64,000 nt of DNA from Oopsacas minuta (lineage: Eukaryota > Animalia > Porifera), in contig JAKMXF010000177.1 in assembly GCA_024704765.1 (NCBI GenBank), positions 568,963 to 632,962 of the forward strand. The letters run 5' to 3'. Below the pieces are notes generated by a model that did not search any database, was not told the origin of the DNA, and saw only the letters and a list, made by a program, of their open reading frames with translations. The position numbers and the translations under genes are program-made. Every line of letters starts with the position of its first letter. The first letter of the stretch is position 1. This document shows, piece by piece, positions 2,217 through 52,092 of the stretch.

Positions 2217-5200
2217 GTGAGTGTATTAGTCTTGTTAGACAATTACGTATGTGTTCCTTTACAAACTACTTTTTCTAGGAATCTAAAACATATTCCCCTT
2301 CAATAAATTATCAAAAAATGAAAATTATTGAATGTATTCAATCAGCAGCTTCTAGATTGGATGATTCTAATGGTAGTGAAGAACGGACCCTTACTCGTAT
2401 TGGTGACTTTGTTAAACTGTTTAAAGAAGAGAAGTATTTTGGTGAGTATAACACGCTTAGCTGTATGCACCAATTCTTAGGAGCGGTCTTTGTAGCGTGT
2501 TCCATATATGGATCCCGTACCATTTCATACCTGCCAACCTGAGTGAGGAAAAGCCATACGGAAGATACTAATTTAGCTAGACATCGTGGGATGTCACATA
2601 TTAGCATTCTATTGCACTACAATAATCGGGACAGTTCAAATACGGGTCTGACATGTTGTATGAATCTATGTGCAAATAATAATAATTTGTTATAATTTCA
2701 GGACTCTAGCATCACACCGTAAATAGATCAATAATAATAATAATAATACTAACCACTATTTGTATAATTATTCAATAGTTAGTTTTATTTAGACATTTTA
2801 ATATACCAACCTTCGGCTTGTCGCTTCGTGATGAACTCGGCTCCTTACGCCTCGAGCAGGCCCCACTGAGAGGGCTGTAGCCGGGCAAATCCCGGGGCCC
2901 CATCTTGATGGGCTCTTTAAGAATTTTTAATAAGCTGAGTGTTAGGGGAACAATATTCACCAAGGGGAAACACTCGGAGAAACAGGAATCCCTATGATAC
3001 TGGAAATGTTTTGAATGGTAACTGTTAATTCTGTACAAATTTATCCTCACGTTCGACACTTTTGTACTCCATGGCTGCTGAATCGGCACTTACGTGCCCG
3101 CCATGCGCCCAGATAAACCCCTTGCACTAAATTTTTTACAAAGAAACACAAAATGTAGATTCACTAATATACGTAATGTGTTCTTGGTTATTTTAAATTT
3201 AATACTTGTATTATGAAATAATCTTGTAATTTAGATGAATTTATTCAACCTTTCTGTCAAAGAATGACAAATCTATTGAAGAACCAGTATGATTCTTCAT
3301 TAGATAGTAGTTATGACTGGATCTTACAAACTGCTAACTGTGGAGAAGACATTAAATCTTGTGGGACCTTTCATAAAGCTGTTAATCTCCGTATTAATAG
3401 CACGATTACTCCTCTTTTATCAGAGTTGATCGCTTTCATAGATAGAAATGCAAACTTTGAATTGGCAGTGCAAGATGAAAAGGTATCAAGATGTTATTAT
3501 GATCTATGGTGTGATATTTTCAAAGATGAACAGCTGTTAGTATTTCAATACGCAGATACAATTTCTAGTAATACGTTCCTTCCTAGAAGGAAAGTACCTG
3601 TTTTGAGTGATGGAGCTGGAGGGAAATTCTTCAGAGCGAATTTCCCATTCTCATGGTTAATACAAGAGAATTGTTCTTTACTAATGTCTAAGGCCAAGAA
3701 TTTAGCAGGTAATATCACAAATTTGATGAGAGTCGTGTATAACGTGTTTGAATCATTTAAATTGCAGCACCTATACGGAGATGCACTATTCAACATGTAC
3801 TATAGCCAACTTTTTATGAAATTTGTATCATGACCACACCCAGATCAACTGCTAGTTCACGACTACAGGTTCTGTCAGGATTGGTTATGTTTGGTCACCT
3901 TTGGTAAAAATGGCCATAATGTTTGACCTACCAAAAAATGACGTAAAATATCTCTGCCGCAGTGTGACCAAGTTTGGTCATATGATCCTCGACCACAGTT
4001 TAATAAACCCTGTGTTATAGTATTGAATATACTATCCACTCTCTGGCCAAAAAAAGTATTTGAACACTCTGCCACAATTGACACATTGCACAAATATGTA
4101 TTTTACTTTAGCTGCATAGGCTGAAGATAATTTCAAACATTTGTGAACTTAATTCTATCATATATTTTATCATTACAATCGCCTTTTCTGATATATCCAC
4201 AGACTATTCAATACGTATATTCTCGCAATGTGTCATTAATGGTATGGCGTTCCAATAATTTTGGATTTGGGAGTGTATACAAAACCAATCAAATTGGGAA
4301 GAGTTGGAAGAAATTCAGGATTCGATACTTCAATGCCTTATGTTAATCTTGCTGGGGTTCCTTTGGTGGCTCCCTACATATGAATTTCTTGAGATTGATT
4401 TGGGGAGGTCTCCTAAATCAATCTGAACAAATGCATATTTAGTGCCCTACAAACCTTTCTATCTTCTAGGGAAAATTCTACCTTGGATGCACTTTGAGTC
4501 TGTATTTAATGAAACACCTCTTGGTAAACTTATTTACAAGAATTTAATGTCTAATGAGGAAAATGCCAAATATATTGAGCTTTATTTGAGAGACTTTATT
4601 TATATGAAGGTGTATCCTACTTCTAAAGCTGATTATTTGGTAAGTATTAGCTATTAGGATATTCTAATTCTGCTGATATTTCGAAATTAGTATCTTTTCG
4701 CATATTCATTCATCAATTGACTTTCGAGCATGTCGATTAGAGAGGAGTGCCTCGAAATGACTAGAAACTTCTCAGCAGGTATAGCTACTAATTCAGGGTA
4801 AATCCTTACTCCAACAAAGCAAAATGACTTGGAACAACATCCAAGCAGGTACAGCCACTTCAAACGAAACCATGTATACTTAATCGCCAACCTCTTGCGC
4901 GGAAAATGTTTAATCTTTAAACGGATTTATAAAGCACTGGGAGCAACAAGAAGGGCTCAGGTTATTCACTAGCCCAATTAAGGCAGATTTTTGATGAATT
5001 TTCTCTATTCTTACCCTTGGTGTTGTATCAGTACCTTTTGATTACTCAGCTACTCCAGAAATATTACGAACTTATTCATACTTCAAATTCGGACTTATTT
5101 CGGCGCCCATTCTTACAATATATAATAATATACACTCAACTTCCCATTGAATAAAAGGATCATTTGGTCAATTCTTAATTCTTATGAATTATGAAATCTA

Positions 5201-8200
5201 TTATGCACCAATTTTGCCAAATAATGCTTACTAAGCATAAAATTACACATTTAGAGATTTTTGCTTATCTACATTAATGTAATATGTACATTCATCGAGT
5301 AAAAAATTAAAAGTCTATACATTCTAGATATATAAGTCACATGTCTACAAGTTGGCCTGCTCACATAGCCCTGGCCCATTTTTCTGAACCTGCACCATGA
5401 CCTTGTACAATATGAGTCCCGATTTTGGCAACTGAAATTTCCATAACCTCGCTATATTAATGATAGATACTTTTAAGTTTTGCCTGATTGATTGAAACTA
5501 TTCTTCTTAGGTATTTGAGTGTATCTTGCTGAATTGTATCCACAATCTGTGTTCAATCGATGCGAGCGAAGGATATGAAGATATTCGTTATTCTGCTAAC
5601 AAAACCACTATTCCTAAGATTCATTATGCTTACCAGGACTCTAGACAGCTAATTGAGCTTTTCGAACAAGCTTTTGGATTGAAAGATACTTTGGGCAGAA
5701 CAATCTCTGATATGCTCCCACAAATGTGGGATGATCAAGATATGAAGTTGAATTGTTTGGAATTAGTTTTGATAGAAGAAATCATTTCATTATGTTCTCA
5801 TAATAAGGATCGTACTTCTTCAATGGAGCTAGCAGAAATATATGTTACTGAGATCAGAAAATGGCAACCTCTGATTGAGAAGGGATTGTCTCGTACTCAT
5901 TCAAATAAAGATATTAATGAATATCAGCTCGAAATTAGGTGATTTGAAAATTTCTAAAACAAATAATCATATACCGCTTATATAGGATCTGGATTGGAGT
6001 ATACACTCAATGGCCAAAAGTATTGAAACACTCTGCCACAATTGACACATGGCACAAATATGTATTTACTTTACTGCATATGCTGAAGATAATTTCAAAC
6101 ATTTGTGAACTTAATTCTATCATTAATTTTGTCATTAGAATCGCCTTTTCTGATATATCAACAGACTATTCAATACGTATATTATCGCATTGTGTCATAT
6201 GCCGTATGTGTGTTACTAATGGTATGGTGTTCCAATACATTTGGCCAGGGAGTGTATAGCCCCTTTAGAAAGTAGGATAGGACCGACTACTATGAATGCA
6301 GACCATAACCAAAGATTGGATTCAGGATTTTATTGTCTTCCCTGATTATTCCAATGGAGTGCTAGTACTATTCTAGGTTATAGGGTTTAGAATACTTACT
6401 ATGACTAGATTTATTTATTGTTTTCTCTGAATTTCTCTCATTATTATTATTTTGCAAATAGGCGGAAGTGGAACCGTATTATAGCAGTTCAATTATTTAT
6501 CTCTCATTGCACGCTAGGAGTTGGTCTTAATGTTACAGAAAGCAGCATAAACAGATTATTCTTGGTAAGTAGAATGGACATCTTAGGTTGGAAAATTTCT
6601 GACACAAATTCATTGTATTACAATCCCTATTCGGTTAACACCTACACTCTAGTATATTACGTAATTAATTTGTTCCCCTAAGGGGGTACATATTATCCAA
6701 GATCTACTTTATTAATAACTTAATTATTTACACATCTTCTATGTAAAATACAAAAGCAAGCTAGATATTAGGTTTCAATATGCTGTCAGGGGTAATTGGG
6801 CGTGTAGAGTCCGATTTTGACATTTTTAATTTTACAGTCAAACACATAGCGGCCACCTAAAAACAGGGTTGAGAAATTTCCAGAGAATTAAGCGCTCCTA
6901 ATTTTTGGGCGCGCTCTCATCCCCGATCCTTATTCAGAAATAGGAGTGCACTCCGGCTCCCACTCCACAAAAATGGAGCGCGCTCATTTTCATTCTTTCA
7001 GATTTACATTAGGTTTGTATTTTAAGTAATTAATATTAAATTTATTTAATTATTTCCTGAATCTTAAATGGACCGTGCTCCTCTAATGCCAGAAGTGGAA
7101 AATCATTATCTTCTGAATATCAGCTCTAATCCTCGTAGATTTTCAATCTGGTTAATATTTGTTTATATTCGCTATTTCAGCTCTAAAATTATGGAGTTTT
7201 GTTATCTCTCCCAAATATTATCCACATTCGAAGATAAATGCTAGTTAGGGTTCTGTTTTGGGGCCAGGATTTTCAAATCCAGAGCGATCGATAGTTGTAT
7301 AACTATAAACTATAAACGAAAATTCTGTATCATTAAATGTACTTTTATTACCAATGAGGAGATGGTCACCCTTAGACTTAAAGTCAAAAATTTTTTTCTT
7401 GTAGAGTGGATGTTATTGTATTAACACGTTAATAAATTTGTATTGATATTAGTCTGTGTTTATTTTATTCACTAAACTCTTTAGCGTATACACTTATTAA
7501 TTATATGATTAATCATATTTCACCCTCTTATCAATACTTCAAATTGGTCCTAGAGGTTAGCTTTCGTCTGATAATTAGGGTAAACAGGGAAATAGAATCG
7601 ATTCTAACACTTTAAATTGTCTAACACGATTATTTACATAAAATATTAACATTTTTTGTAATTGAATTATTTAATAGAACATTACAGACTAAAAATATAC
7701 TAAAATAGATTTAGTGAAATTCCGTCAGTAAAGGCTGTGATTTGAGAATTCATTTATTTTAATTTCGCTACTAATTCTGTATCTTAGATCCTTGGAGAGT
7801 CTCCAGATTTTACTTCACTAAAAGTTGTTAATCATATTCTCACAATTATTTCTAACTGTTTTAAGAAAATGAACAAAGAATTAGGGTAAGGAATGTTATG
7901 AAGTCATTCTATTGAATGTGATCTAATTTTGTTATTTGTTCATAGGACTCAATCGCCTCTTAGAGAAAGGTTCAAAGGCTATGCAACAAGATTTTTCATC
8001 AGTATTCTCACCAATTTATCATTCAAATATTTAGAAATTGAAGATGACAATACTGATATTATTCGTTTATTGATGGGATTTGTTTCACTAGATGAGACTA
8101 CTTTCTCGCAAAGTTTAACAGAAGAGACGAATATTAATATACTCACTAAGAATGAACTTGATCCTTCTCCAGCATTCAGAACTTTCTTACTTCAACTTTT

Positions 8201-11200
8201 GATCAAACACAGGTAATATCTCAACTAAATACATATACGTAATGCTAGCATTAGCACTTCGTCTCTTTGATGCTAAAGCAAATTTCAGATTTTAGCCATT
8301 TATTATTCAAAAATATTGAATAATGTTGAGTTTGTCATTCCATTATATATTTGCAAAGTATTATTTTGGTAAATATTTATCCTCAATATTTGTTTATCGA
8401 TCAATCATCTGAAATACAGTCCATATACGTATACCACATCTATGATTGAGGGGAATATTCGAAAATTATCTGTGTAAAAGTTAAATTCTCCGAACCAGGC
8501 CCGAAATACTGCCAATATCAGTCAAATAAAACCTAAGAGTATTTAGGTTATTCAATCCATTATTCAAACGAATAGTTACGTATTATTTAATGAAAATGTA
8601 GATCAATCTCAGGCAGCTCTGTAAGAAGTGAAATACCTAGTTTTATCTCTTCATTTCACCCTAAGTAATGTAATGATGTTGTTAAGGTATTTTTTGTATA
8701 AATATAGTAGACATAGAATATTGATTGGTAGGGCCCTTTGGGACAACTTGAATTATAATGAGTCGAAAATCCTAACCCAGGACCAATTATCGGGCTAAGA
8801 ATTCATCATCAATATCTATTATTAGGCACGATTTCTTTAAACAACACATTACTGAATATTTAACAGATACAGTTGGGAAGTTTCAAGATACATTGAAACA
8901 ACGAGAATTATTTCTACTGATAGTTCAATCAATCGAGGTAGGATTTTGTGTATTATTAGATTTATTATGTTTGTTTAGGCCGTTTATAATTAGATATTAT
9001 TAGAGCTAAAAACTTATTGCTTACATTTCTTTTCATTCGTTTTAATATTTGGATTACATAGAAACACTTTGCTGTCTCTAATTTACGGGTAGCGAGGGAT
9101 CTGGTACAGGCAATAATATTGGGCATTTATCTTTATACACACTTTAGGAGGGTTAGGCCCGAATTTCTTAGAGAGAGAGAGAGCACTTTATAGAGCTATA
9201 GGACATCTCGGAATAACATACTATAAATCCTGTTCTTGATAACGAACAAACAAGCAAACAAACAAACTAATAATAATTGACCAATAAAGTGGTTGAGAAG
9301 GAAAATATGTGAAAATTTATGGTCACATTGCAATAAACTCATCTACAAACACAAAACACAACACAAATTATCGATTGATTAGGAGTAACCTCGGTGCAAG
9401 AAGGGCGTCTATTGCGGACACGAAATGTCTGAAACCGTGTACCGCAAGGAAGCGTAACTAACTTGTCTATATATACAGGAATGGGAAATTTATAGTCTTA
9501 TTAGAGCGTAAAATTTCCAACTTTTCTAAAATGAATATGAGCGTGCTCCAAAGGATGAAGAGCGCTTAATCCTCTGTGTAATATATTGCAATTACAATTA
9601 CCGTATCCAGGTTCAGGGACTTTGCTGATCATTCCGAAAACTTATCTCGAATCCACATTATTCTTTCAAGTGTGAGGATCCGAGTAGAAATTGCGTCACT
9701 TTTCAGACCCGACCGACCAGAAAAACCCGAACCCGATTCCAAATCTGGTGAGGTCTTGCAGTCATCAATAATACCATATATAGTCATTTTCAAGATTACG
9801 TCATATTCATCAGCGATTTCATATCAAAATGTATTATCAGGGTATGGGAAGTCGGAAATATACTAATTGTTTGTAAATGATTTGGTACTATAATTATTCA
9901 ATCAATCCCTGGTCCAAAATCTTAAGTAACCATCAATGCCTTATATAATTTAATATATGCTTAGAATGCTTTATGTTGATCAATTTTAGGATTTATTTCA
10001 TCAACGGTTTAAAGAATATACTCAGGAACATCAGCACCAGCTTGTTAAAAGTCAAATAGATACTGAAATAGCAGTCAATTCTGATATTACGAAAGTATCT
10101 TATGAGTTACTTGAGCAGATTGGTACTCTGAGGTTTATTAGTGTCCACATTTCTAATTGGATTATTGATTGTTATAACTTACTAAGAACACAATTGGATA
10201 CACAACCACCTAACTATTTCACAGAGAGAGATAGGTTAATCACAGATTTTAAAGACATGTGTAGGCTGGAAGGGAATGAATATCTTCATTTATTCCTCCT
10301 CAAGAATATTTATCATCAATTAGGCAGTGATACGTTGCAATTGATTACTAAGAATGATAAATGTTCCTGGATTATACCAGATGATGTGATGGATATCATT
10401 ACTGAGGTATGTTTAACGGATAATTGTATATAGCTCAGCTATACTACATAGAATACAGTTTTTTGTGAGCCCTATAGATGCTAACGACATGACATGGTGT
10501 CTTTACGTCCGTCCACTCGCCGTGCGAAATCTAACAGTCCGATTAAGCTGAAAATATGTACACAAAACACATACATTTTGGGGTGGAGTTTGCACCTGCG
10601 ATATGAATTATTCTAAAGTTAATATTCAAATCATTCTATGTAAAATTCGAAAGCATGCTAGAGGCTAGGAGGATTCAATTTGGTGTAATTTGGTGCCGAT
10701 TTTGAATTTTGGAGTGTGATAATCCTATTTTTACCTTTTGACATATATTTCAGTTTGATGCCAGAAAAATTCTTTTCAACGGCTAGTCAGGGTAATCGAG
10801 CATAGGTACAATACTAAAATTGTACTAAAATGGTACCAATTTTTATTATCCATGGTCCATCCATATTTCATTTAATGACCTTCTGTGGTTATGTTGCAAT
10901 ATATTAGAGATTTTCGTGTGTACGCGTATACACTAAATGTTTCGGGTGTACTCGTACACACGATATTTTTTAGTGTATTAGAGTTTACCTCAGCATATGG
11001 GTTGTTTATATGTGATTTGTTTGGATTAGTACATACCAGCTTTAGCGTTATCAATCAGATGTTATTACGTTTGTTGTCGTCGTTACTACTAATTGGGTGA
11101 TATTTCTTGGATATACAATATATCTGTAATAATACATATAAGCGTACATTCAATATACATAATATTTATCTGTTGATGGATTCAAGGAAACAGAATTTTA

Positions 11201-17200: not shown

Positions 17201-20200
17201 AATCATTGTCTGTACTCGTATTAGCGGTGGTAAAATGAGTATTCGGGTTTCTTATTAGTTAGTATTTTTGATCATTTTCTGTAGTCTGCCAATATTTCAT
17301 ATGTGTGTTCCCTTTCTGTAGCATTTCCACTTGGATATTCCAACAAATTTTCTCTAAATAAATCTGAAAATTATAAATTGGTCCATGTGGCCCACCAAAC
17401 TATTGAGGAAGCCAATGTGGCCCGCAATTAAATCGAGTTGGGCACCCCTGATCTAACCCAATGCAAGACGATAATGCACGAAGTAATCTAGTTGTTGGAA
17501 GAAATAGACAATCCAATGATTGAAAAAACCGATAGCAAGCAGGTGAGATCAAATGTGCTTTCAAGGCGACTGCCTAGAATGAGTAAAAAGGGTAAAAAAA
17601 GAAACAAAATAGATAAGAAATGTAGAAACACTAACCTGAGTAACTACGTTATATCCCCTTTTGGTTGGTGAAACTAATGAGTTTCCAAGCTAACAAGTAA
17701 TGAACTGTAGGAGAGGTAACAAAGTAGTACCCTTTACATCATGCTCAGTTATTTCTGTATTTTCTAATATTGAGATTGATTATTGTAATTTGGTGACGGC
17801 CTCTTTGATATTTTTCTAGAAAAAACTGGATTCAAATAACTCAGGATTAGTGTAGTTTAGAATATCACCAATTAAGATTTCAATTCCGTATATCTGTTAA
17901 TCAACTGAGATTCAAAGGAACTTGGTGTTGGCAACAAACTGCTGAAACTGTTAAATCTGAATGAATTGATAAGGTAGATAGAATATGTATAGACTGATTG
18001 GCGAATTCCAGCTGTATGATCTCTAAGGTATTGCTAGAGGAGTACCAGATCGCCCAATCTTGGTTAAGGTGTAACTCTGGCAACTTAATTTTAAGATCCT
18101 CAAAATTCCCCAAACCGAACCGTAATGAATCTTGTTGATCTTGTATAATGCTATCATGAAGAGCTTTAGCAAAGTTTTCCTCTTCCTTAGATTCAAGATT
18201 TAAACGCTTTGCTATTTGACCAGTTATATTCAAGTATGATGGGCCTGCTTGGAAAATAATAGGCACTGCATTCGGACGATAAATTGGTCTAATGCGTGGT
18301 ATTTCAGAGCAGCAACCATCAGCTTGGAGTGCCCGGTCAACGTGGATAAGATCTTCCTCCTAAAATGGTGTATGCAAATGAATATCTTATCCTCTGGAAG
18401 GTCTTCGGCTAGATCCCTATGAAGAGCTCTAATCCACTTCCCTTTCAAGTCTTAGATCCTTTCGGTAAACTGAAAACAGTGCCAGTAGGGTGACCTCTGT
18501 AATTAGTTTTGCACCCAAATACAGAACATGTATTTAGCATTAAGAAGTGTCTAAAATACATGTGAATAAAAGAAAAAGGTAAAACGAAGAAGGAGGAAAT
18601 GTATAAAGACGAAAAATCAGGGAATTCCAATCACGGGACAAGTTTCCGGTAAAATACAGCATAGAATATTCCAAACAGTACCTGTGTTCATTTCATAATA
18701 TAAATTAATGATATAATCCAATTATGGTTTAGATGTTATGGGTTATTAATGATATTTTATTTAAATGACTTCTATCTCATCCCTGGTCCAATTTCAGAGT
18801 CGATTTCCAATTGAAATAGCCACATTTATCGTTTAAAGTTCATAAGTAATAATAAATAGCACAAAAACGAATGCACTTGTAGTTCATCCATGATCCAGTA
18901 TTTTTTGTTGTTACCGTCCTTATATTACGTAGTTCACGCCTTACTCAATTTGGACGGTAACATATATACAGTAGATGTCGGATATAAGAACACCAACTTG
19001 AATTACGGATACTTTTGTGTTCTATTCCATGGATTTTTTTACCGGTTATAAGAACATTCTATGCCGGATATAAGAACATCATAATAGAAAACGGTTACTA
19101 TATACCCTATATAAATTCTGCTGGTTATAAGAACACTCTTAGTGTAGTACTAAAATTGGTTCTCATTACCAGTATGTTTGTAGAAGTCGGGATTAATTAT
19201 ATAGTAGATGTGAGAATACTTTTCTTTAATATGGTTTCTACATCCAAATGTGATTAAATGAAGTGTTCTCATAACTGGCATCTACTATACTACATAGCGG
19301 TTATAAGAAAATTATGTCCAGTTCCCGACGATTTTCTTATAACTGACATTCACTGTACTGTAACTTTAAACTGGCAAAGAAACAAACTATTTATCATACT
19401 AAAGATGAGAATGCTAATTGAACTAACTTTTCTAAGTAGTTGATTCTTGTCTAATTTATCGATTGATCTATGATTATTTGTAGTTACCAACATTTGTACC
19501 TGATTACTTCATTATTTATGGCGAAGATTATCTAACTATCACGAATAAAGTGGAACAATTATATCTTGTCGAAAAGAAAGATGCTCTTACCCTTTTCTTC
19601 AATACAGAACCAGTAAGTAATTGTAATAGTTCCTAGTTAGTTAGTGTGTTCAGGGAATATCTCAAAGTCCGGGAACAGATTCCTTAGCAAGAAATTTCTT
19701 CACCAGTGTGTTTATAAGGGTGTCTACTAAATCTCAAAAAATTTGAATGCAACTCCCGTAGGGGAACCTAACCAAATTCTATAAACTGGAAATTGTCACC
19801 TGTGTCTCTCTCGAAATTATTCATAAGGGATAGTTACCAGGCTATTAAGACTGAAGATGTTCTGATCACTTTTGAGTGATTACAAATATCACAATAAACA
19901 TTAACATAGCCTACTCTATGAAATTAGATTCGATTTAAAGAGGAAAGGAGTTTATGCATTTTAACGTGTTCAAATATTCCTGGTGGTTGTGGATTCCTAC
20001 TTTCAGCAACTGTCATCGGGTACCCTATGGGAGTTGAATTTAAACTTATTGAAACATGTTAGTGAACACTCTTCAGGCGCGGTACGTCCCTTCGAAAAGT
20101 GCTACGGCGACAAATTCACAGTACAGTACAAACCGGTTTTTAAAGCAGCCCCTATAGGGAGATGCCGTGATGGTATAGACGATATGCCACGTCCGTAAGT

Positions 20201-23200
20201 CCGTCTGTGCTGCCCTGAGAAATCTGGTGCATTGCTGCATCAACACGTGCCCCTGAAAAGAACAAAAATACATAACCCTGAGCTGCACTTCCAGTTTGTC
20301 GGTTGGACATTTTTTCTTACTATTTCTTTACACGGAAAAACGAAATAATTACAATTGTACGGCGCTCTACGCACCAACCATACCGGGTATGCTGCCCCTG
20401 CCAATATCAACACATAGGTGAAGAAATTTCTTGCTAACGAATTTGTTCTCAGACTTTAGCTGTTTATTCACATTCCCTACTATCCAAAGATATTTCATGT
20501 AAAGGTTTACCTATACTGTTGCTGCATTTAAATTATCTTCACATACTGGAAAAGCAAAAACCTATTCAAGTATTCTGAATCCTCATTGACCGGAATGTAG
20601 CCAGAGACATGGGACAAATCTGACTACACCTCTGCTCATTGAAGACATTGACCAGATTAGATTATCATTTAAGAGTGTCTTAACTTTAAGGTGGAGCATC
20701 CTCTTCATATTCACTGTAACACAATAGATGTCTTATATGTAAGCCAAGCGCAGCAAGAATATATATTTGGGAGTAGCTGTGTGACTATACATAATTCGTG
20801 TTATATTACCTCCCTTTTATCCTTTCAAGCTTTAGGTCAGAAAAATGAACTGAACGTCTAAACCGTGTGTTATTTGAAATATATACACGGACATTCTATG
20901 CTATATAATATTGTTTTTGTTGTATTATTTCAATTATCTGCTTTAATATCAAATACATTTTCTTTAGGAAAAAGCATTGAAATCATTTGAATATGTATTA
21001 TATTCAATATTTCAAGAAGTTATCAAATACTTCATGGTACTTCACGATGAAATGAGCATTGAGCAGGTAATGTTAGTTGACTAATTCATTAATAATAGTA
21101 CTTACTTGTATAAATAGAAAATACTGAAAACTAATGCCTTTGTCGTCAAATTTGCCTATTTTCGGAATCATTTTGGTTTAGATTTGAAATACTCTTTTCT
21201 CTAGCTGCATTAGCTAACAAGCAAGCTTCGGCTTGTGCACACTTTGTGCACAAGCCGCGGAGCAATAAATTAAATATAATAATGAGTATATATATCCCGA
21301 CCCGAGTCCGAATCGTGTTTACTTTATAGATCCCGACCCGAGTCCGAATCTCAACACGAACTGACTGAACCAGGGACGTAGGGAGCAAGGTTATTGGTGC
21401 GCCTTGCCATTCCAGCTCCTACGGACTTGTGACTCCGCACCCTACCCGAAGGCATCTCCCTATAGGAGCTACACTAAAAAATGTTCAGCTGACATACTGG
21501 AGTCAGCTCGGACATCTGGGTTATGTTTTCACCCCTGATGAATAATGATTAGTCATTAGAAACAAATTAACAATATCATTTAAAATATGAGCGTAATGGA
21601 GTGAAAATGCGATTAATCATATGATAAAATATGTAGAAGTAGTTGTTAAAATATCATAATTGGAATCTACATACTTGGTTACCCCTGACTAACAGTCGAA
21701 ATGAAGTTTCTAACATCAAAATATATTTTGATGTTAGAAAGATTTAACAAATGATTAATCATATGAGAAATCTGTGGATTTTAAACTTTCAGACTATGAA
21801 AATGTCAAATTCGGACTCTACGCACCCAATTACCCCCGACGATACGTTGAAACCTAAACTCTAGCATGTCTTTGAATGTATATGTGTACCAATTGTCATG
21901 TGAATCCGACTGCTAGATTTTGCACGTCACACATTGTCTATGCCATAAGCGCATCTCCCTAAGGAACTGCACTAAATCATTGGGTTTTAATCAAGGTTGC
22001 AACCAAATAATATATGGCGAATTGTTCAATATTCGGTTTCCAACTGAATATCAGTATTAAGTATTCAGTCAGGCTGCTTTTCGTGAATACTGATATTCGG
22101 TTCTATCAGTTTCAACCTTGGTTAATTGTATATACAAGATGTAGCCAGGGACTTTTCTGGGAATAATTAGATGATTGCAAGGGACAAACTATCATTTCTG
22201 ATTTATTGGATTCATTAATACTATGTAGGTAGGGAAATGATTTCATCTTGTTTCTAGAAATTTTGCACTCTGATTGATTTTGTTAATAATGATTTTGCTA
22301 TGATAAATCAAGAGCTAAAGAACCTTACCAATCAAATAGCGACGAACAACTTGGGAGATGGAATTCTGCCCAATCTCATTCTAAATGATCGTTGCAGAAA
22401 CAATGAATTATTCCTAATCAGACTAATCTACCATGTAGCTGTTATGCTATCTTATAAGAAATATCACCAGCTGTTCCTACCTATTGCTTTGATTTATGAA
22501 AAACCTGAGACATTAAATGATAAGTTATTTCCTACTATGATGGATGATCAGTTTCTATTTACAAAGAATGCTATGACTGAAGGTGGGAAATGGTATGAAT
22601 GTCCTAATGGTCATCCCTACTTCATTGGAAATGTAAGTTTAGAGTAAACTATTCGGATAATAAAGAGATATATTAATCAATACTAATAAATCTCTGAATT
22701 TCCCGAATAGTTTTACTCTAACGTCACTTTCAAATTTCAAATTTTGACCACTGTTCCTATACAATTGCCCTATCCATCAATTGTATTCTGGATTTATTCA
22801 TGTTTTGTATCTAGTGTGGGAGACCTTGGGTGGTTTCTACATGTAGAGAGTGTGGCTCCCAAGTTGGTGGGAGTAGGCATAAATTAGATGATAAGAATAA
22901 ACTCCTCGATGTAGCTAAAAATGAAACTAAAACAGGATACTTCATTGGAAAAATGAACCATGCTACAACCGTTCTTGCAGGGGAAAGGTAATTTGTGTCT
23001 GAAATCAAATCAAGGAATTGATTATTATTATTATCATCTATAGGTTACTTGGCCCTGCATCAGTTAAGATAATCCGTGTATTGATTGACATCTCTTTCAT
23101 CTGGTCATCATGTTCTAAATACCCAACAGTTAGTAGCCATGTGCTTCCTTCTCTTGTGACAAAAGGATTAGATGACCCCAGAGATCTTCCTAACTTCTTC

Positions 23201-26200
23201 TATTTGCATCTAGAGAGAGATATTATGGATCTGGTAAAGCTAACTGGCAAGAACTTTGGTGAAGTTGTATTTTACCTCCATCTGATAATCAAATCCCTGA
23301 TGGAGACATCAGAACAAACATGTGAGTAGTAGTATTCTATATCAGCTGATCCAGCGTTCTGAGTTCTAACAATTGTTTTAGAATTAAGGGTTTATCGTTC
23401 CCCCAGTATAGGGTAGGCCGATAATTATTAGCTTAATTAAAAGTACCGGGTAATATTCATGATTGACGTTTTTGATGGAGCATACTTTATCCTAGTTAAC
23501 GAGCCTTTGGCTCATCGCTTTGCGATTAATTCGGTGCTTTGCGCCTCGATATAACCATTAATATCCTAATTGATTCATATTACATATATAAGTATATTAT
23601 ATCACGAAATCAACAGTAAATTTACATATGAGAAACTTCAAATACGAAATTCGGATTCAGCGTACTTTTTACCACTATTTTAACCTTTGCAAGCAAGTCT
23701 CTATGTATATCTTGAGATTTGACTCATCTCTTTACTACAGTAAAACCTGTCTTTTACGACAACCAGGGGTTCCAAGGAAAAAGTCCGTAATGACAAGTGG
23801 TCCTTGATCACAGGTTTGGAATAGCCATTCGTTTAATATTTATATCAGTCTCAACCTTTTCGAACTGGGGAATACTAAAAATTCAAAATTCGGTCAGGAA
23901 AGGTGGCATATTGTGGGGAACCTGTGATTCAAATTCCAAACTTCTATCACGTATATTAGCTGAGCTGTAGTTAATAATTTGATTATTCGAAAATCCAAAA
24001 AGGTGACAATGATCTTGTCCGAACCAGGCCCAAAATCAGCCCTTGGTGCCTTCCAGTTTCTCCAATCAATTCTGGACATATATATATATATACTAGCGCG
24101 CTTCGCTTTCTAGATCGCAGCGAGAGCTTAGTGCCCCAGGTTTGCTTAAGTATTAATTAAATAGTTCAAAAGTGGTATTGGCTAAGTTGTATAATACGTG
24201 ATCAATTTTGACGTCTTATCCGTCTAGGATAACCTGAGATATGAGATTTAACATTGTTCTACTTGTATAAGCCAAATTATTATCAAATATTATATAATTT
24301 GGTCAACTTATACTGAGAATTCTCATTAACAATTATAGAACTACTGTTATGATGGATAATACTTATTGCAGAAATCAGCCTAATATAAATTACGTCACCA
24401 AAAATTGTAAATTGAACGTATAACATATTATAGTAATACGTCTTCATTGAAAGATGTATTAACAAATACTCGGAACTACGTGCCTTGAATTCACAGAATA
24501 GATAAATTTTAAGATTTATTATCCATGATCCATCCAAATTACATTTACCGGGTAATTCAAAAAAATGCAACCCAAAAGTAAATGTTTGCAGTGAAGACAA
24601 TTCTTAATCAAACTCAATCAAACTCAGAACATACGTAGAATATCTATATTTTTAGTACATATTAAAAATTCAGCGTACTACAGTCAATATTTTATGAATT
24701 AGAGCAAATGTTCCAAATGACCTCCTTTGAGTTCTGTACATTTCTTGAGTCGTACCACCAAGTTGTTCATGACATTTTTGCATACAGTGGTCGGAATCTT
24801 TCTTATTTCTTCTCTGGTGTTTTCCTTCAACTCGCTGATGGTTCTAGGCTTAGTAGAATAAACTCGGTCTTTAAGATAGCCCCACAAGTAGAAGTCAGGA
24901 GGGTTTAAGTCGGGGCTATAGGGGGCCCACTCAAAATTCGTCTTGAGACTGATGACTCTTGCTCCAAAGTGTTCTTTGAGCCAGTCCCTGGAGAAATTTG
25001 AGGTGTGTGAGCTCGCTCCATCTTGTTGGAACCAAAAGTGATTCAGAAGTGATGAGTAGAAGACTCTGAGCTGCTCCCAGAAGAGCTCAAGGACCTGGAC
25101 ATAATGTTCTTTCGTAACTGTAACAGCCCTGTCATTTTCTTCAAAAAAGAATGGTCCTATGATCCCTTTCGCCGAAATGGCTGCCCATACTGTGCATTTT
25201 TCTGAGTGTAGTGGTTTCATTGCAACTTCCATTGGTCTCTGGGTTCCTCAGAACACGTTTGTCTTGGAGTTGATTTTTCCATTTAGGCGAAAGTGGGCTT
25301 CATCGGACATCCAAAGTAGTGAAAGAAATCGGTCCTGACATTCAATTTTTTCTAACAAATTCTTGGACATTTTAAGCCTTTTGGACTTATCACCAGCTGT
25401 TAACATCTGTTTTGTTTGTATACGATATGGAAACCTCTTAAGATCATCAATTAGGATCCTCCTGATAGTGCTTGCAGATATTTTTCTATCCAATGACAAT
25501 GATTGACTCCTCCGCCTGATTGACCGTTTTGGACTGAATTCAACAGAATTTCGGACCATCTCAATAACTTTTGTTGGTCGTTTCTTTCTCCGACCAGAAT
25601 GCGTTAGTCTGTCATCACACTTACTATTGAGGTTTTGAACTGTCCCATACTTCCTAAACTTCTCCACCCAACGATAGATCATCGATTTATCGGGAGCAAC
25701 TTGGGTCTGGAATGATGTACGAAATTGCGTCTTTACAGTCTCGTATGAGGAGATATTAAAATAATGTTCCACGCAGAAAATTCGGTGTTGCAGTATCCAA
25801 TTTGGCATTTTCTGATCGTTTAGACTCAAACTAATTATAATCAAAAAGAATAAATAGGATTAGTTAAGAAATAAAGATAGGGTACCCGTAAAACATTTTG
25901 GGTTGCATTTTTTTTGAATCACCCTTTAATGGCCTTCTGTGATGACACTGGAGATGCTATGTCACTTGTGGTTAGTACTCTTGGCACTTCGTGCCTCGGC
26001 TAATAAGAAATTCTGAAATTTTAGAAATTGGGAGAATTTTGATATTTTTGTACAGTCATGATGACGTGATAATCTCCTGATGAGTTAGCTTTAGTCTAAA
26101 TCATGACATCAGAACATGTGACATATTCATGGGTACTTGTGATTCAAATTTCAAACTTCTATCATTTATATTGCTGAGCAGTGGTTAAGCGAATATTTTA

Positions 26201-29200
26201 GTATTTGGTTAGGTTGCTATTCATGAATACTGATATTCCGTTCGATCGGTTTCAACCTTGGTTGAATTCAATCCTGAATACTTAGGATACAAATCTAATG
26301 TAAATCTAAAAGTATGAAAAGGAGCGGAGGTGGGTGCGGCGCTCCTTTTTCGGTTCCAGAACTCGGAGCAAGAGCGCTCCAAATAATGAGAAACGCTTTA
26401 TGATCTGTACATATGTTTATACGTCTGGAATTGATTGAAGAAACTGGAAGACCCCCAGGGTGATTTTTGGCATGTGAGGCATGAATATATAAATTGGGAT
26501 TACAGGCAAACATTTTTTGGTTCTATACACTAGAAACTCCCAAGATATTTATATCTCCTCTTCTACAGGCGATATTAATACTGAATTAAGACAGTACAAG
26601 TTGAGAGAGCAGTGGGAGAGAGAATTTGATAAGAAATTCATTCAACCTATACTCACCTCTCTAAACACAGATGTACAGAAACAGATGGAACAGGTGCTGA
26701 GTGAGAAGGGGATAGCTAACAATCCTTTACTCAGGTTAATACAGAGATTAATATATTAGTTGAATTATCTATGAATTGTCCCAAATATTTAGAATTGTAT
26801 ACGAGAGAGATGAATCAGAACCAAACAACCCGTTACCTCATTTCTGGCGCTACAGAACTATTGTGAGCCTGGAGCATTTCTCTCAGAGCTTCAGTACAGC
26901 TGATTTAAATACCAAAAACAAGTGTCCGTTAGTAGACAAGTTCCTGAAAGAAGAAAACAAATTATTCGTGACTCGTTACTTACCAGACATTGTACAGCTA
27001 CAGAGACGAGTAGGAGATAAGTTCCTACACAGACTGGAAAAGAGAGAAGCTGCTAATACTTCTATTAAAGATTTCTTAGATAGAATGAAAACTGGTAAAT
27101 AGTTTATAGTTATACTCTATTCTCTCTTTTGAGATGAGTTTGCCATTTTGAATTTTATTCTTAGAGAACAAACAAGAATCAGAAGAATTAGCTAGACTAG
27201 TGAAGAGTCTTGCTACAGCATGGAGTATAATTGGAGAAGATGTGAAGAAGAATGGACGTCTCAGAATTGAAGAAGCTCTAGAACAACAAGAAATAACTCC
27301 TGCTACTTCTCTATCTTACCTGCTCCCCTCCTCAACAGGAGATGGACTGCTGATCACCTCACTCACTGACTATCTAGTGCTGATACACAACTCATTTGTA
27401 CACGCCTACAGAGACAGAGTGAAGGGGTATGTATCATTCTATTAAATGATATGTCTATAGACATGTGTCATATGATTCTTATTGTATTAGGTCTCGTAGT
27501 AATAAGATACCACTCCGTGAATTGAATATGAGTCATGTAATTGAGTACGAAGAACATCTGCAGCCTCTACTACTGTCACAAGCTCACTACTCACTAGCTC
27601 TCGGACAAGGAAGTCAGGTGACTTATGATTTTGAGGGAGTAGAACAGCAATTAATGGAACAATTCATTCAGAACAAACCTCTTATTCTAGCAGAACATCT
27701 CCGCTTTGAATACATTCGTGAGGCTTACAACTTGGGTGTGTTTGAGCAGGTGCGACACAAAGTTCAACAGGTGAGTAACTCTTTAAAAGGAATATCTTCA
27801 GTGTTCTTTCTGTCAAACACTAATATATTTGGTTATTAATCAATATTATCTCATCATTAGACTGAACTGAAGAAAATAGTATGGAGTGCAATACGGAAAG
27901 ATATGGACTCTCTTGAAGCAGTTACTGATGTTCTCCTACTACTAGATGTAGTGATTGGATTCTTATCATCAGCAGGAGGAGATCCAGAACAGAAATTGTC
28001 TTCTTATCTTTATGATGTTCTAAAATACTCTTACACGTCAGAAGGAGCTGGTCCTCTACAGAGCAGAAGAGTATGTATAATTGTACATTATCTGTAATAT
28101 GTATACAATTATAGTAAACTCTCATTATAAAGAAGCTCCCAGGACATCTGTTTCATTTCGTTGTACACCCAGTTACATACATTCAAGCAATCACTTTGAT
28201 ATAACCGAAGATTACTGTCTGTCTTTATATTTGTTCTAATATACTTACCTATTTTATTGAAGGTATAAATACTTGGCAACTTCTTACTTCCTTCCTTCCA
28301 CGTGGCAATTTGAATTTCTGAGTTCTAGTTGTATTAATTTGGGGATATAGATGTGTACCCATTGTCTATTGTCTAGAATGTGCTATTTCCACCACTTCTC
28401 AGTTCTCACAGTTATTACAATTAATTATACAACGGTTTTGTTTACTAATATTTCCATTTATTCTTTTCTTTCTACAGGCAGAGAGTGCATTGCGTTTGAA
28501 ACATATACTGAGCTTTTGGGAATTTATGTCAATAGAGAAAGCTCGTAAACTTTGTCTCCATGGTCAGGTGAGTACCAGGTGTATTTGGTTGACATCTATT
28601 TATCCGGCACACATCTTGCGAATACTGATTAGAGTATTACTAGATCACCAAAATTACTGTGAAGATTTAGAATATAATATTCTAACGTAAAAATTTCCTA
28701 TTATAATTCTTAATAAATATAGAATTTATTAACGAGTTTGAGGCACATCGATTCTACTGTCTCAATTACCTCCATATATTGGACATTTTGAAAATGTCAA
28801 ATTATCACTTGCTCAGATTGTAACCTTTTTCCAATATAGATTCCCTTCTCTTCTCTGAAAGATGAGTTTCAGGAAGTTGTGAGTGATAAGGAGAAACGTC
28901 AAATAATACGAAGCTGTACCCACTTTCCAGTAGAGAAAATTCTGGTATTTCTTCATGATTTTATTCTCTTCTTTGTGCGAGTGAGAGATGCTGAAGAGAA
29001 GGATTTTGGGTAAGAACTCTAAACTTTCTATATACACAGAATTCATAAAAGTTGTATAAGTATTGCATGGGCTCGCTTTGTTGGCTTATTTTCGTATCAA
29101 TATACGTACAATGGGTATCACTTTAATATTTCTATACATACTAGTCTGGAATGGAAACACCCTTAATAGAATCCTGGATCCGCCACCGATGTAAAGTATG

Positions 29201-30672
29201 AGCACCTGCAGTGAAAAACCTTCAGTTTTTTGAGCATTTTTAACGCCCTAAGATGGCACAATAGCCTCTGCAACATTGCGAATCGTGTACAGTCGAAATG
29301 GGGTGTTTCTCCACAATACTATTTAAATTTTTGTTACCTTTATTGTGTAAAATAGTGCAGTTCTAATGCATTTTTTCGGGTTATTTTTCCTTCCTGTTTT
29401 TTGCCCTGTGTTAACTGTTAAGTGATCAAAAATTTGATTTGCAATTTTAATTGATTAAAATTATTGGATTTACAAAATTAACGCTGCAATGTCTAACAAA
29501 TTTGATATAGAATACTTATAACAAATCAGGCAGTGTTAATTAACAACTTAGTACAGTAAACTCTCGCTATCACTACCAGGGAGTATTCCTAGCATAAAAG
29601 TAAGGGAATGCTTCAAAGCACTACCCATTCCATTAAATTTGCGTCTCTTATGTGGTATAATCGGCGCCTTCTGATGTCCTAGTTTAGCTATAATCCAAAT
29701 TTTCCATAAAGAAGCGCTTTTGCGTTCCCCCCTGTTTATATAATGTAATTAGATAGAAGGACCTACGGACCATTGGACCACTTCGTTATATGCAGGTTCC
29801 GTTGTATCCGACTTGGTTCGACGGGAGTTTACGTAATAACTCATCTGGCCAGTACTTACAGAGTTATAGTACAGTAGATACTTGCAAACTAAGTTGCTTG
29901 GAAAATAGTTGAGGGACGATTGCGAGAGTGATTTCTTTGCGGAAAACTCTAAATCTGAGAGGTGTGTCCAATTTGCGATTGCCTACTGTAATTTAATTGG
30001 ATAGAATTATATTCTACCTCTTTAATTAATTCAATGCTAATTAGCATACTTAGCTACTTAGCTTAGAGTATATATCAAAATTGTTAGACATTGCATCCTA
30101 ACCAATAGAACCCATTGTTTATTGTATAGTAGTTATTACTTAACTTATTGATTTTGTATTATTTGTACTACATAGGCTAATTCGATAAACGCCTTCATTG
30201 CGTTTGGGGCAAAAGAAAACAGATTTCAACTGTATAAGTATTATAACACAATTTGTTTGTACAATAATGAGGACTTAGATTTAAAGATTACGTTTTGCGA
30301 AGTCATTTGCTGTGTAGGAGGATTTGCTGATATATGTTACCAATACGTATTTAAAACGAATACCCAATAATATATGTGTATAGCTTATGTTATGTGTTAT
30401 TGGTAGTTGCCCACAAGATTCTAAAATGTGTTAAGGGCCTTACCGCAGATGCCATACCTACAGTACAAATTAGTGAGTTTACTGTATTCAAATTTGATTT
30501 TTATAGACTGAGGGAAAGCATAATGGAATATGCTGAAGAGAATGATTGGAAACTCCCTGAAGGGTTCTGTAAATTTCCTGAAGGAATCAAACTATCACAA
30601 TGCGCCTCTGCTTGGTCTGTGTTAGCTGTATTAGAACACAGTATTTCTAATTCTTATATTACTGACGTATAA
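1..30672 (+). CDS. RNF213: RNF213/mysterin-like giant AAA+ ATPase-E3 ligase, 5'-partial, 23 exons in window
   Basis: join(<1..2216,2279..2441,3235..3708,4470..4639,5511..5938,6462..6564,7788..7885,7946..8212,8826..8937,9990..10406,19484..19612,20968..21066,22258..22632,22815..22987,23044..23321,26569..26734,26793..27094,27165..27426,27491..27770,27861..28070,28478..28567,28840..29009,30507..30672). All introns are GT..AG with matching phases; from base 3 the exons sum to 7146 nt (2381 aa + TAA). Motifs recalled from human RNF213 occur in order: VVLDEVGLAEDSP, ISNWSLDPAKMNR, GLRDFYSLIK, LYDALNQYY..YVDLGLGTHRMKCRV, CPNGHP..CGRP..CxxCG, LGFLSSAGGDP, terminal FPEGIKLSQCASAW. Confidence 0.95.
2279..2441 (+). 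CDS. RNF213: RNF213-like exon 2
   Basis: ttttctag acceptor; ESKTYSPSINYQKMKIIECIQSAASRL..KYF; donor gtgagt at 2442. Confidence 0.85.
3235..3708 (+). CDS. RNF213: RNF213-like exon 3
   Basis: atttag acceptor; DEFIQPFCQRMTNLLK..ANFPFSWLI..; donor gtaata at 3709. Confidence 0.9.
4037..4275. mobile_element. Tc1-type MITE, copy 1 (RNF213 intron 3)
   Basis: CACTCTCTGGCCAAAA start, ..GGGAGTG|TA end; collinear with 6004-6254. Confidence 0.7.
4470..4639 (+). CDS. RNF213: RNF213-like exon 4
   Basis: tcttctag acceptor; ..SVFNETPLGK..ELYLRDFIY..; donor gtaagt at 4640. Confidence 0.8.
5511..5938 (+). CDS. RNF213: RNF213-like exon 5
   Basis: ttcttcttag acceptor; VFECILLNCIHN..IPKIHYAYQ..; donor gtgatt at 5939. 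Confidence 0.85.
6004..6254. mobile_element. Tc1-type MITE, copy 2 (RNF213 intron 5)
   Basis: TA|CACTCAATGGCCAAAAGTATTGAAACA ... TGTTCCAATACATTTGGCCAGGGAGTG|TA: ~27-bp imperfect TIR, TA TSD. Confidence 0.8.
6462..6564 (+). CDS. RNF213: RNF213-like exon 6
   Basis: RKWNRIIAVQLFISHCTLG; aaatag acceptor, gtaagt donor. Confidence 0.85.
7788..7885 (+). CDS. RNF213: RNF213-like exon 7 (helix preceding the expected RING position)
   Basis: ILGESPDFTSLKVVNHILTIISNCFKKMNKELG; atcttag acceptor, gtaagg donor. Not in the ORF track. Confidence 0.85.
7946..8212 (+). CDS. RNF213: RNF213-like exon 8 (helices following the expected RING position)
   Basis: TQSPLRERFKGYATRFFISILTNLSFK..DPSPAFRTFLLQLLIKH; catag acceptor, gtaata donor. 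Confidence 0.9.
8826..8937 (+). CDS. RNF213: RNF213-like exon 9
   Basis: HDFFKQHITEYLTD..ELFLLIVQSIE; attag acceptor, gtagga donor. Confidence 0.85.
9990..10406 (+). CDS. RNF213: RNF213-like exon 10
   Basis: DLFHQRF..HLFLLKNIYHQLGSD..WIIPDDV; ttttag acceptor, gtatgt donor. Confidence 0.9.
10460..10830 (+). repeat. Dispersed repeat with GTCC microsatellite (possible Helentron-associated HINE/DINE-1-like)
   Basis: T-rich start, GTCCGTCC core, then GTGCGAAAT..TTTTGGGGTGGAGTTTGCACC; collinear with 38280-38570. Related pieces near 6740-6830, 7490-7750, 20140-20320, 21450-21975 (minus) and 38620-39360. Boundaries approximate. Confidence 0.5.
10892..11628. mobile_element. Non-autonomous TIR element with TGT..ACA ends and ~125-bp TIRs
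   Basis: 10892-~11020 (TGTTGCAATATATTAGAGA..GTGTACGCGTATACACTAAATGTTTCGGGTGTAC..) is the reverse complement of ~11505-11628; flanks GTTA/GTAA (imperfect 4-bp TSD). Confidence 0.7.
13492..13775. mobile_element. hAT-type MITE inserted in the right arm of the foldback
   Basis: CAGGAGTGGGCAAACT..AGTTTGCCCACCCTG; 8-bp TSD CCATAAAT/ACATAAAT; the left arm shows the empty site. Confidence 0.85.
15069..17450 (+). mobile_element. hAT transposon (SPIN/Charlie/GTF2IRD2-like), full length
   Basis: Perfect 14-bp TIR CAGGGGTGCCCAAC; perfect 8-bp TSD ATCTAACC (15061-15068, 17451-17458). Confidence 0.95.
15411..17198 (+). pseudogene. hAT (GTF2IRD2/ZBED5-like) transposase with three frameshifts
   Basis: MEPCSKKRKVD..CLIC..RHY..KH zinc finger; LALDESTD, TTDGAPSM, HCIIHQENLC, VRWLSRG, CEQLFS. 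Frameshifts near 15500, 15810 and 17080. Confidence 0.92.
18969..19355. mobile_element. pogo/Tigger-type MITE
   Basis: TA|CAGTAGATGTCGGATATAAGAA ... TTCTTATAACTGACATTCACTG|TA; internal GG(A/T)TATAAGAA motif repeated about five times. Confidence 0.8.
19484..19612 (+). CDS. RNF213: RNF213-like exon 11
   Basis: LPTFVPDYFIIYGEDYLTI (cf. recalled human DRYLVYGDEY); tttgtag acceptor, gtaagt donor. Confidence 0.85.
19665..20465. repeat. ~65-bp inverted repeat pair in RNF213 intron 11 (probable decayed MITE)
   Basis: AAAGTCCGGGAACAGATTCCTTAGCAAGAAATTTCTTCACC vs GGTGAAGAAATTTCTTGCTAACGAATTTGTTCTCAGACTTT; boundaries approximate. Confidence 0.5.
20968..21066 (+). CDS. RNF213: RNF213-like exon 12
   Basis: EKALKSFEYVLYSIFQEVIKYF; tctttag acceptor, gtaatg donor. 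Confidence 0.8.
21992..22120. mobile_element. Short hAT-like MITE
   Basis: CAAGGTTGCAAC..GTTTCAACCTTG termini; no clean TSD; a matching right end recurs near 26225-26260. Confidence 0.5.
22258..22632 (+). CDS. RNF213: RNF213-like exon 13 (ends in first half of RZ finger)
   Basis: ..KLFPTMMDD..GGKWYECPNGHPYFIGN; tttctag acceptor, gtaagt donor. Confidence 0.92.
22815..22987 (+). CDS. RNF213: RNF213-like exon 14 (second half of RZ finger)
   Basis: CGRPWVVSTCRECGSQVGGSRH..TKTGYFIG; atctag acceptor, gtaatt donor. Not in the ORF track on this strand. Confidence 0.92.
23044..23321 (+). CDS. RNF213: RNF213-like exon 15
   Basis: LLGPASVKIIRVL..HLERDIMDLVKLTG..YLHLII; donor gtgagt at 23322. Confidence 0.9.
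24548..25926 (-). mobile_element. IS630-Tc1-mariner element, DD41D (rosa/VS-type)
   Basis: TA TSD at both ends; ~30-bp TIR (A/C)(A/C)GGGT(G/A)ATTCAAAAAAATGCAACCCAAAA; transposase inside. Confidence 0.9.
24699..25808 (-). pseudogene. DD41D transposase with one in-frame TGA
   Basis: MPNWILQHRIF..WMSDEAHF..NVF*GTQRP..WFQQDGA..SPDLNPPDFYLWGYLK; 41 residues between the second and third Asp; TGA at 25248-25250 where Trp is expected. Confidence 0.9.
26569..26734 (+). CDS. RNF213: RNF213-like exon 16
   Basis: DINTELRQYKLREQWEREF..IANNPLL; ctacag acceptor. Confidence 0.9.
26793..27094 (+). CDS. RNF213: RNF213-like exon 17
   Basis: IVYER..FWRYR..RYLPDIVQLQR; gtaaat donor. Confidence 0.9.
27165..27426 (+). 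CDS. RNF213: RNF213-like exon 18
   Basis: ..YLLPSSTGDGLLITSLTDYLVLIHN; gtatgt donor. Confidence 0.9.
27491..27770 (+). CDS. RNF213: RNF213-like exon 19
   Basis: ..HVIEYEEHLQPLLLSQAHYSL..YDFEGVEQQL..FIQNKP; gtgagt donor. Confidence 0.9.
27861..28070 (+). CDS. RNF213: RNF213-like exon 20
   Basis: ..LDVVIGFLSSAGGDPEQKL; gtatgt donor. Confidence 0.9.
28478..28567 (+). CDS. RNF213: RNF213-like exon 21
   Basis: AESALRLKHILSFWEFMS; ctacag acceptor, gtgagt donor. Confidence 0.9.
28840..29009 (+). CDS. RNF213: RNF213-like exon 22
   Basis: IPFSSLKDEFQE..ILVFLHDFI; aatatag acceptor, gtaaga donor. Confidence 0.85.
30507..30672 (+). CDS. RNF213: RNF213-like terminal exon 23
   Basis: LRESIMEY..KFPEGIKLSQCASAWSVL..TDV*; tttatag acceptor. 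Confidence 0.9.
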
Positions 30673-51900: not shown

Positions 51901-52092
51901 CTCTGACAGAGCTAGAGTGTGGAGAAAGAATGGATCGCTGTCATCTGTCAATCTCAGAATGAGTTCTTGGGAAAATGGAGAGGCAGATGATGCTGCGTTC
52001 TTAGAGAACACAGATATTCTGATTCTTACGAATCTCTCCTCAGAATTCAGTTTGGTTAGGACAGGAAGTTCCTGAGAGAATAACTCTTCCAT
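48996..52092 (-). CDS. SASS6: Centriole cartwheel protein SAS-6, 3 exons, ~614 aa
   Basis: complement(join(48996..49977,50301..50596,51526..52092)); phases 0 and 2 consistent, 1845 nt. Head domain LRLTDDSDPFFLHTL..DLKSQQGLLIDFASFP..ETNPFKHLTHLSL, long coiled coil (NEIIQKLQ..LKN..QEK..NENVISWLNKQLN), Pro-rich tail. Confidence 0.93.
51124..51245. other. 58-bp-stem hairpin in SAS-6 intron 1
   Basis: 51124-51181 pairs with 51188-51245 with two mismatches; 6-nt loop GTAATA. Confidence 0.9.

Follow-up and report, generated by a model that had tools for sequence, protein, structure and literature searches.

RNF213 (mysterin) is the main susceptibility gene for moyamoya disease, and its product is an immune ligase that ubiquitylates bacterial lipopolysaccharide. 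In the mouse protein the E3-RING (residues 3940–3999) sits as an insertion between the final two E3-back helices (PMC7311170), and a mutant in which a GSGSG linker takes the place of residues 3941–3999 still auto-ubiquitinated like the wild type, with UbcH7 or UbcH5c (Ahel et al. 2020, PMC7311170). That this engineered deletion keeps activity puts in question what the RING does in RNF213. Here we describe a homologue of RNF213 in a stretch of 64,000 nucleotides from the sponge Oopsacas minuta (assembly GCA_024704765.1, contig JAKMXF010000177.1, positions 568,963 to 632,962 of the forward strand; hereafter the window, at its full length). The gene has no RING at the position where RING-bearing relatives carry it, and retains an intact RZ-type zinc finger. 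The window carries the 3' two fifths of this RNF213/mysterin-family gene, and the RING exon was lost from it in the course of sponge evolution.

The G+C content of the window (32–40%) and its short GT..AG introns mark it as part of a eukaryotic genome. It opens within a gene on the plus strand (Table 1), the first 2.2 kb being a single open frame. The product of this 759-amino acid exon matches mouse and human RNF213 over AAA4–AAA6 (6tax residues 2260–2886), and shares an identical VVLDEVGLAEDS motif. At E ≤ 1e-30 it matched 424 library proteins; among the matches listed, all those with a named source (15 of 15) were annotated as RNF213, RNF213-like or uncharacterised. The library proteins closest to it are each encoded in one open frame of 3,200–3,600 codons, which stops at the point corresponding to the end of the first exon of the window, so that in the sponge clade the N-arm and the AAA core are encoded by one giant exon. 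A quick IQ-TREE analysis of 71 rows of the AAA region united the giant-exon genes in one clade (100 support); the row of the window falls in a clade of 15 rows (100 support), itself nested among rows that bear the RNF213 annotation. Like vertebrate RNF213 (mouse 6TAX, human 7OIK), the sponge gene thus combines a homologous, dynein-like AAA core with a colinear E3 scaffold (E3-back, shell and core; traced with a family profile and by tblastn with bilaterian RNF213) and an RZ finger whose cysteine (7oik 4462) is kept; it differs in having no E3-RING, the flanking helices being joined by a few residues, and in being split into a giant exon at the 5' side followed by about 21 small ones towards the 3' end. 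ZNFX1 also carries an RZ-type zinc finger (PF20173), but its core is a superfamily 1 helicase without the dynein-like AAA ring or the RNF213 E3 scaffold; the comparison with it covered the shared Pfam family.

The E3 scaffold proved too diverged for phmmer against PDB chains, exons 8 and 10 yielding nothing or noise, and a family profile was built for this reason. From 150 homologues gathered with the 759-amino acid exon as query, the 26 that bear a RING were used with 300 residues on either side of it, giving a profile of 634 columns in which the RING occupies columns 299–339. Open segments of the plus strand of the window follow this profile in order (Table 1), and the only gap counted, columns 291–356, which no segment of the window matches, contains the RING. 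The preliminary description of the locus had proposed that exons 7 and 8 resemble the segments flanking the RING in human RNF213, and the profile bears this out, as the columns matched by the two exons lie on either side of the RING. By tblastn exon 8 also aligns to residues 1504–1582 of the Saccoglossus protein P0017, about 24 residues past its RING (1442–1480). Exon 7 is a weak match when taken alone, yet it is colinear and shows an LG..DFKS..L..C pattern; hmmalign of the spliced exon 6–8 peptide aligned exon 8 alone, and the placement of exon 7 therefore rests on the weak match, colinearity and comparison with paralogues.

Three further lines of evidence agree with the gap in the profile and with the earlier claim that the gene has no RING pattern. 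Strict and loose C3HC4 patterns found no match in the six frames of the window. In the exons after the giant exon, pairs of the type C/H-x2-C/H occur only as CREC, which belongs to the RZ finger, and as a single HNLC encoded by exon 5. A RING-only profile, which scored 4e-18 and 3.5e-12 on true RING exons elsewhere, had no match in the gene; over window segments of at least 8 codons in all frames its best E was at least 2.2, outside the gene or on the opposite strand. The gene thus has neither the cross-brace C3HC4 or C3H2C3 domain by which RING-type E3 ligases are recognised nor the C3HC4 RING that the RNF213 family carries between the last two E3-back helices, and it should not be filed as a RING E3.

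At the place of the RING, exon 7, with the translation ILGESPDFTSLKVVNHILTIISNCFKKMNKELG, ends in an intron with GT at 7886–7887 and AG at 7944–7945, after which exon 8 continues the same frame (GG/G, intron phase 2) as TQSPLRERFKGYATRFF...LLIKHR. Four public runs from one sample contain the stretch; three are DNA-like, and one (X4) is transcript-like, with a depth that is high on the predicted exons and almost confined to them. Contigs of X4 carry the joints 5938/6462, 6564/7788, 7885/7946, 8212/8826 and 8937/9990, from which we conclude that the gene is transcribed and that exon 7 is spliced through the 60-nucleotide intron into exon 8, as the preliminary description had read from the letters alone. 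A 543-nucleotide contig of the DNA-like run X1 spans 7755–8297, and the mini-intron is thus present in genomic reads. The same contigs bear on a missed or alternative RING exon, lying in intron 6 or used in a rare isoform, which would make the RING-less form a splice variant or an annotation artefact. Contigs do lose rare variants, and clean gaps in the gene models of other animals could reflect exon skipping or assembly gaps. Against this, X4 joins 6564 to 7788 and 7885 to 7946 directly, and none of its contigs joins exon 7 or exon 8 to sequence inside intron 6, the intron that the preliminary description had named as a possible place for a RING-coding exon; this intron has no match to the profile and no block conserved with the relative L001, the RING-only profile is silent in every frame as described above, and four relatives share the RING-less structure. 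We consider a missed exon extremely improbable. Within intron 6, about 680 nucleotides (6819–7503) give way to 40 other letters in contigs of X1, X2 and X4; this is an insertion/deletion polymorphism or a repeat and leaves the exons untouched.

Four relatives of the window gene (L001, L002, L003 and L009) have no RING. The products of L001 and L002 are 70% and 68% identical to the giant exon of the window, and in both loci an exon 7-like exon, a mini-intron of about 30–50 nucleotides and an exon 8-like exon follow one another; L003 and L009 had no match to the RING. Two others, L005 (product P0015) and L007 (P0024), resemble the window gene in belonging to the same clade (100 support), in their giant-exon structure and in their exon 7-like and exon 8-like exons. 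L005 differs in having an intact C3HC4 RING (CIKC..C.H..C..C..C..C; E = 3e-5 against Pfam zf-C3HC4_3), encoded on an exon of its own (22621–22812, 192 nucleotides, phase 2 on both sides) between the equivalents of exons 7 and 8. L007 differs in having only a decayed remnant at the RING position (22717–22908), with C-x2-C ... C-x2-C and without C-x-H, which looks like an intermediate between the RING-bearing and the RING-less copies. In the bilaterian gene L004, the product of which clusters with hemichordate RNF213, the RING is likewise a single phase 2/2 exon between the equivalents of exons 7 and 8, and the 60-nucleotide phase-2 intron of the window matches exactly the position of the intron, RING exon and intron in L005 and L004. 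Of the remaining loci, L006 (P0010) looks truncated or has long introns, and L008 (P0043) stops at the exon 7-like exon.

The preliminary description had left open whether the RING-less state is ancestral, with the RING inserted later at this intron, or a clean loss. In the tree, a subclade of 9 rows (99 support) is made up of the RING-less sponge genes, and its sister group is the clade with P0015 and P0024; this subclade is nested among 50 RING-bearing rows, and all other major branches, including the metagenomic rows at the midpoint root, bear a RING. At least five changes of RING state are required, of which the sponge subclade accounts for one and each of four isolated public proteins for another. 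As the RING-less rows are nested and the other branches bear the RING, the RING is ancestral and its exon was lost once in these sponge genes. The opposite scenario, that RNF213 began without a RING, that the sponge preserves this condition and that the RING entered later at this very intron, is in keeping with the RING being a self-contained exon at the exact intron position, as an inserted module would be, and with the sponge clade being one deep branch of the tree; it is contradicted by the RING exon of L005 and the decayed one of L007 within the same clade and by the RING on every other major branch, the midpoint-root rows among them, and it would require that a homologous exon was gained independently more than once, each time at this position and with this phase. 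We regard it as very unlikely. The RING-less state is accordingly best read, on exon positions and tree topology, as a clean exon loss and not as an ancestral condition, and of the two alternatives offered earlier only the loss stands.

The most likely course of events starts from a gene in which one small exon, about 64 codons long and bounded by phase-2 introns, encoded the RING. This exon would have been deleted in the ancestor of one sponge paralogue clade, the two flanking introns merging into the present mini-intron of 50–60 nucleotides with the reading frame kept, and the helices that formerly carried the RING would now be linked by a short linker (..KELG/TQSPL..). The resulting protein retains the RZ finger together with the AAA core and the remaining E3 scaffold, and would most likely act as a ligase through the transthiolation route of the RZ finger, independently of a RING. 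This finger is intact and split by an intron (Table 1), each half scoring above the PF20173 cut-off of 27 bits; the cysteine at the start of exon 13 (CGRP...) aligns to Cys4462 in the numbering of the 7oik chain, the alignment covering 7oik 4462–4508. The earlier designation of the product as a naturally RING-less, RZ-only mysterin agrees with both results. The segment missing from the sponge gene is nearly the same as that removed from the engineered mouse protein (59 residues, compared with a sponge exon of 64 codons). By this analogy, the sponge protein is most likely an RZ-dependent, RING-independent ubiquitin ligase. An immune role of the gene would be conceivable.

A tandem, redundant copy could also lose its RING as a step towards becoming a pseudogene, with ligase function already gone, and the expanded, tandem family, the transposon in intron 10 and the truncated appearance of L006 would suit such decay. 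Nevertheless, the frame conserved with L001 stays open through each of the 22 exon blocks, and the four stop codons found fall within the approximate margins of four of them; the RZ finger scores above its Pfam cut-off, and transcript-like depth on the exons is high. The RING-less structure is common to genes that are only 53–70% identical, and has therefore long been kept. Over 682 codons of the E3 exons compared with L001, the rates of non-synonymous (dN) and synonymous (dS) substitution were 0.32 and 1.44, a dN/dS of 0.23 that is rough, as dS is saturated, and that argues for purifying selection after the loss of the RING. Decay is in our opinion improbable.

We are confident that the window holds a transcribed RNF213 homologue that has lost its RING exon and kept its RZ finger, and that would probably act as a ligase by the RZ route. 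Several points weigh against this interpretation, besides the saturation of dS. The window does not reach the 5' part of the gene, in which a RING is excluded only by analogy with the paralogues P0002 and P0003. Run X4 is not recorded as RNA, its nature being deduced from the exon-only depth and the GT..AG joints, so that the junction which had been proposed for confirmation in RNA is carried by RNA-like but unlabelled contigs. In their junction codon, the contigs with the 7885/7946 joint depart from the window at one or two letters. As the DNA-like runs carry G>A at 7885, the difference is allelic or derives from a very close copy, and these contigs could represent the second allele or a closely similar paralogue. 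Finally, contigs may miss a rare isoform.

Our literature searches turned up neither an account of a naturally RING-less RNF213 nor any work on RNF213 in sponges. The novelty assumed in the preliminary description is nonetheless lowered, since RING-less RNF213 models are already present in RefSeq and UniProt: those of Xenopus tropicalis (XP_012809139.1), Nipponia nippon (XP_009475166.1), Branchiostoma floridae (C3YWC5) and Mizuhopecten yessoensis (XP_021359260.1). These four share with the sponge gene a clean gap at about profile columns 292–356; they are events separate from the sponge loss in the tree and are predicted models of uncertain reliability, the gaps of which may reflect exon skipping or gaps in the assemblies. 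In Xenopus tropicalis all eight members of the cluster (P0029 and P0151–P0157; XP_012809139.1 and isoforms) were without a RING pattern, which means either that a vertebrate has a RING-less RNF213 or that the models omit the RING exon. It is possible, and we put it forward only tentatively, that the RING of RNF213 is an ancient phase 2/2 cassette exon, shared by sponges and bilaterians, that was dropped repeatedly, at the base of the sponge clade and possibly in frog, bird, amphioxus and scallop, with the RZ finger always kept. That the RING is encoded by one old symmetric exon explains both its harmless loss and the clean RING gaps in database models.

Around and within the gene, several other features were recorded (Table 1). 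The gene structure is unusually lopsided, the N-arm and AAA core being in one intronless exon and the E3 module in about 21 small ones, and transposon-type open reading frames lie in intron 10 and in the intron between exons 14 and 15. An intronless tyrosine-kinase frame and an AIG1/GIMAP-like GTPase frame are found near the RNF213 gene; the neighbourhood may be immune-type. The RNF213 family is expanded in the sponge clade, its members being tandem or closely spaced. A second giant exon lies about 1.3 kb past the end of the L001 gene (L001 29490–30380), L003 is a third copy 230 kb away on the 1.03-Mb contig of L001, and a further RNF213 copy lies upstream on the opposite strand in L009 (1–1583).

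Table 1. Features of the RNF213-family gene and its surroundings (window positions unless a locus is named; exon boundaries outside 5938–9990 are approximate). Bracketed segments are the open segments compared with the E3 profile.
Feature	Position	Strand	E3 profile columns	Other evidence
Giant exon 1, 3' part (AAA core, from about AAA4 on)	1–2240 (5' start outside the window; exon end approximate)	+		RNF213, E = 8e-129
Exons 2–5, hinge and first part of the E3 module	~2276–2428, 3231–3710, 4484–4648, 5502–5938	+	4–48 (segment 3222–3830), 38–81 (segment 4427–4654), 107–205 (segment 5511–5939)	colinear with L001; exon 5 joined to exon 6 in X4
Exon 6	6462–6564	+	218–234 (weak)	X4 joints on both sides; 74% amino acid identity to L001
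Intron 6, without a RING exon	6565–7787	+	no match	no L001-conserved block; skipped by X4 contigs as one GT..AG intron
Exon 7, helix preceding the RING in RING-bearing relatives	7788–7885	+	260–290 (E = 0.5)	phase-2 end as in L001, L002, L005 and L004
Phase-2 intron, 60 nucleotides	7886–7945	+		GT/AG ends; skipped by X4 contigs; in relatives: intron, RING exon, intron
Exon 8, segment after the RING	7946–8212	+	363–434 (E = 3e-9)	tblastn to Saccoglossus P0017
Exon 9	8826–8937	+	439–472 (weak; segment 8776–9000)	X4 joints on both sides
Exon 10	9990 to ~10409	+	499–600 (E = 4e-13; segment 9990–10430)	joined to exon 9 in X4
Exon 11	19478–19631	+	610–630 (segment 19484–19633)	conserved with L001
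Exon 12, ends in the first half of the RZ finger (..KWYECPNGHPYFIGN)	22258–22644	+		PF20173 positions 3–24, 33.1 bits; aligns to RNF213 chains
Exon 13, second half of the RZ finger (CGRPWVVSTCRECGSQVGGSRH..)	22815–22988	+		PF20173 positions 25–53, 35.6 bits
Exons 14–22, C-terminal domain (approximate)	~23009–23326, 26562–26741, 26791–27099, 27161–27440, 27483–27781, 27861–28034, 28442–28645, 28840–29019, 30493–30660	+		L001 tblastx blocks; tblastn with C-terminal parts of bilaterian RNF213
Giant exon in relatives	L001 10001–20380; L002 10001–20923; L003 10001–19813; L005 10001–19495
Transposon-type open reading frame in intron 10, 466 amino acids	15692–17089	+		weak DUF4371 match
Transposon-type helix-turn-helix open reading frame in the exon 14/15 intron	25251–25844	-		DUF4817/HTH_32
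Tyrosine-kinase open reading frame, intronless	32061–34061	-		PK_Tyr_Ser-Thr, E = 3e-80
AIG1/GIMAP-like GTPase open reading frame	42269–43177	+		E = 5e-10
SAS-6 N-terminal domain open reading frame	51415–52092	-		E = 2e-32
NHL-repeat open reading frame	54129–55322	-		E = 2e-14

The sponge gene is a natural counterpart of the RING deletion made in the laboratory. In contrast to the engineered deletion, the sponge loss is natural, heritable and common to a clade of paralogues, and the gene is under purifying selection. The suggestion that the gene offers a natural test of RING-independent function holds insofar as a natural RING-less case exists, but the engineered mouse deletion had already behaved like the wild type. 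A natural RING-less clade that is expressed and, by its substitution pattern, selected provides evolutionary evidence that RZ-based activity can stand alone, and the RING-less genes beside their RING-bearing paralogues form a natural comparison for the contribution of the RING. Should the RING indeed have been lost repeatedly, its part would be that of an accessory module, with the RZ route as the core activity of RNF213 conserved across animals, and the sponge clade would be a ready natural system for finding out what the RING adds.

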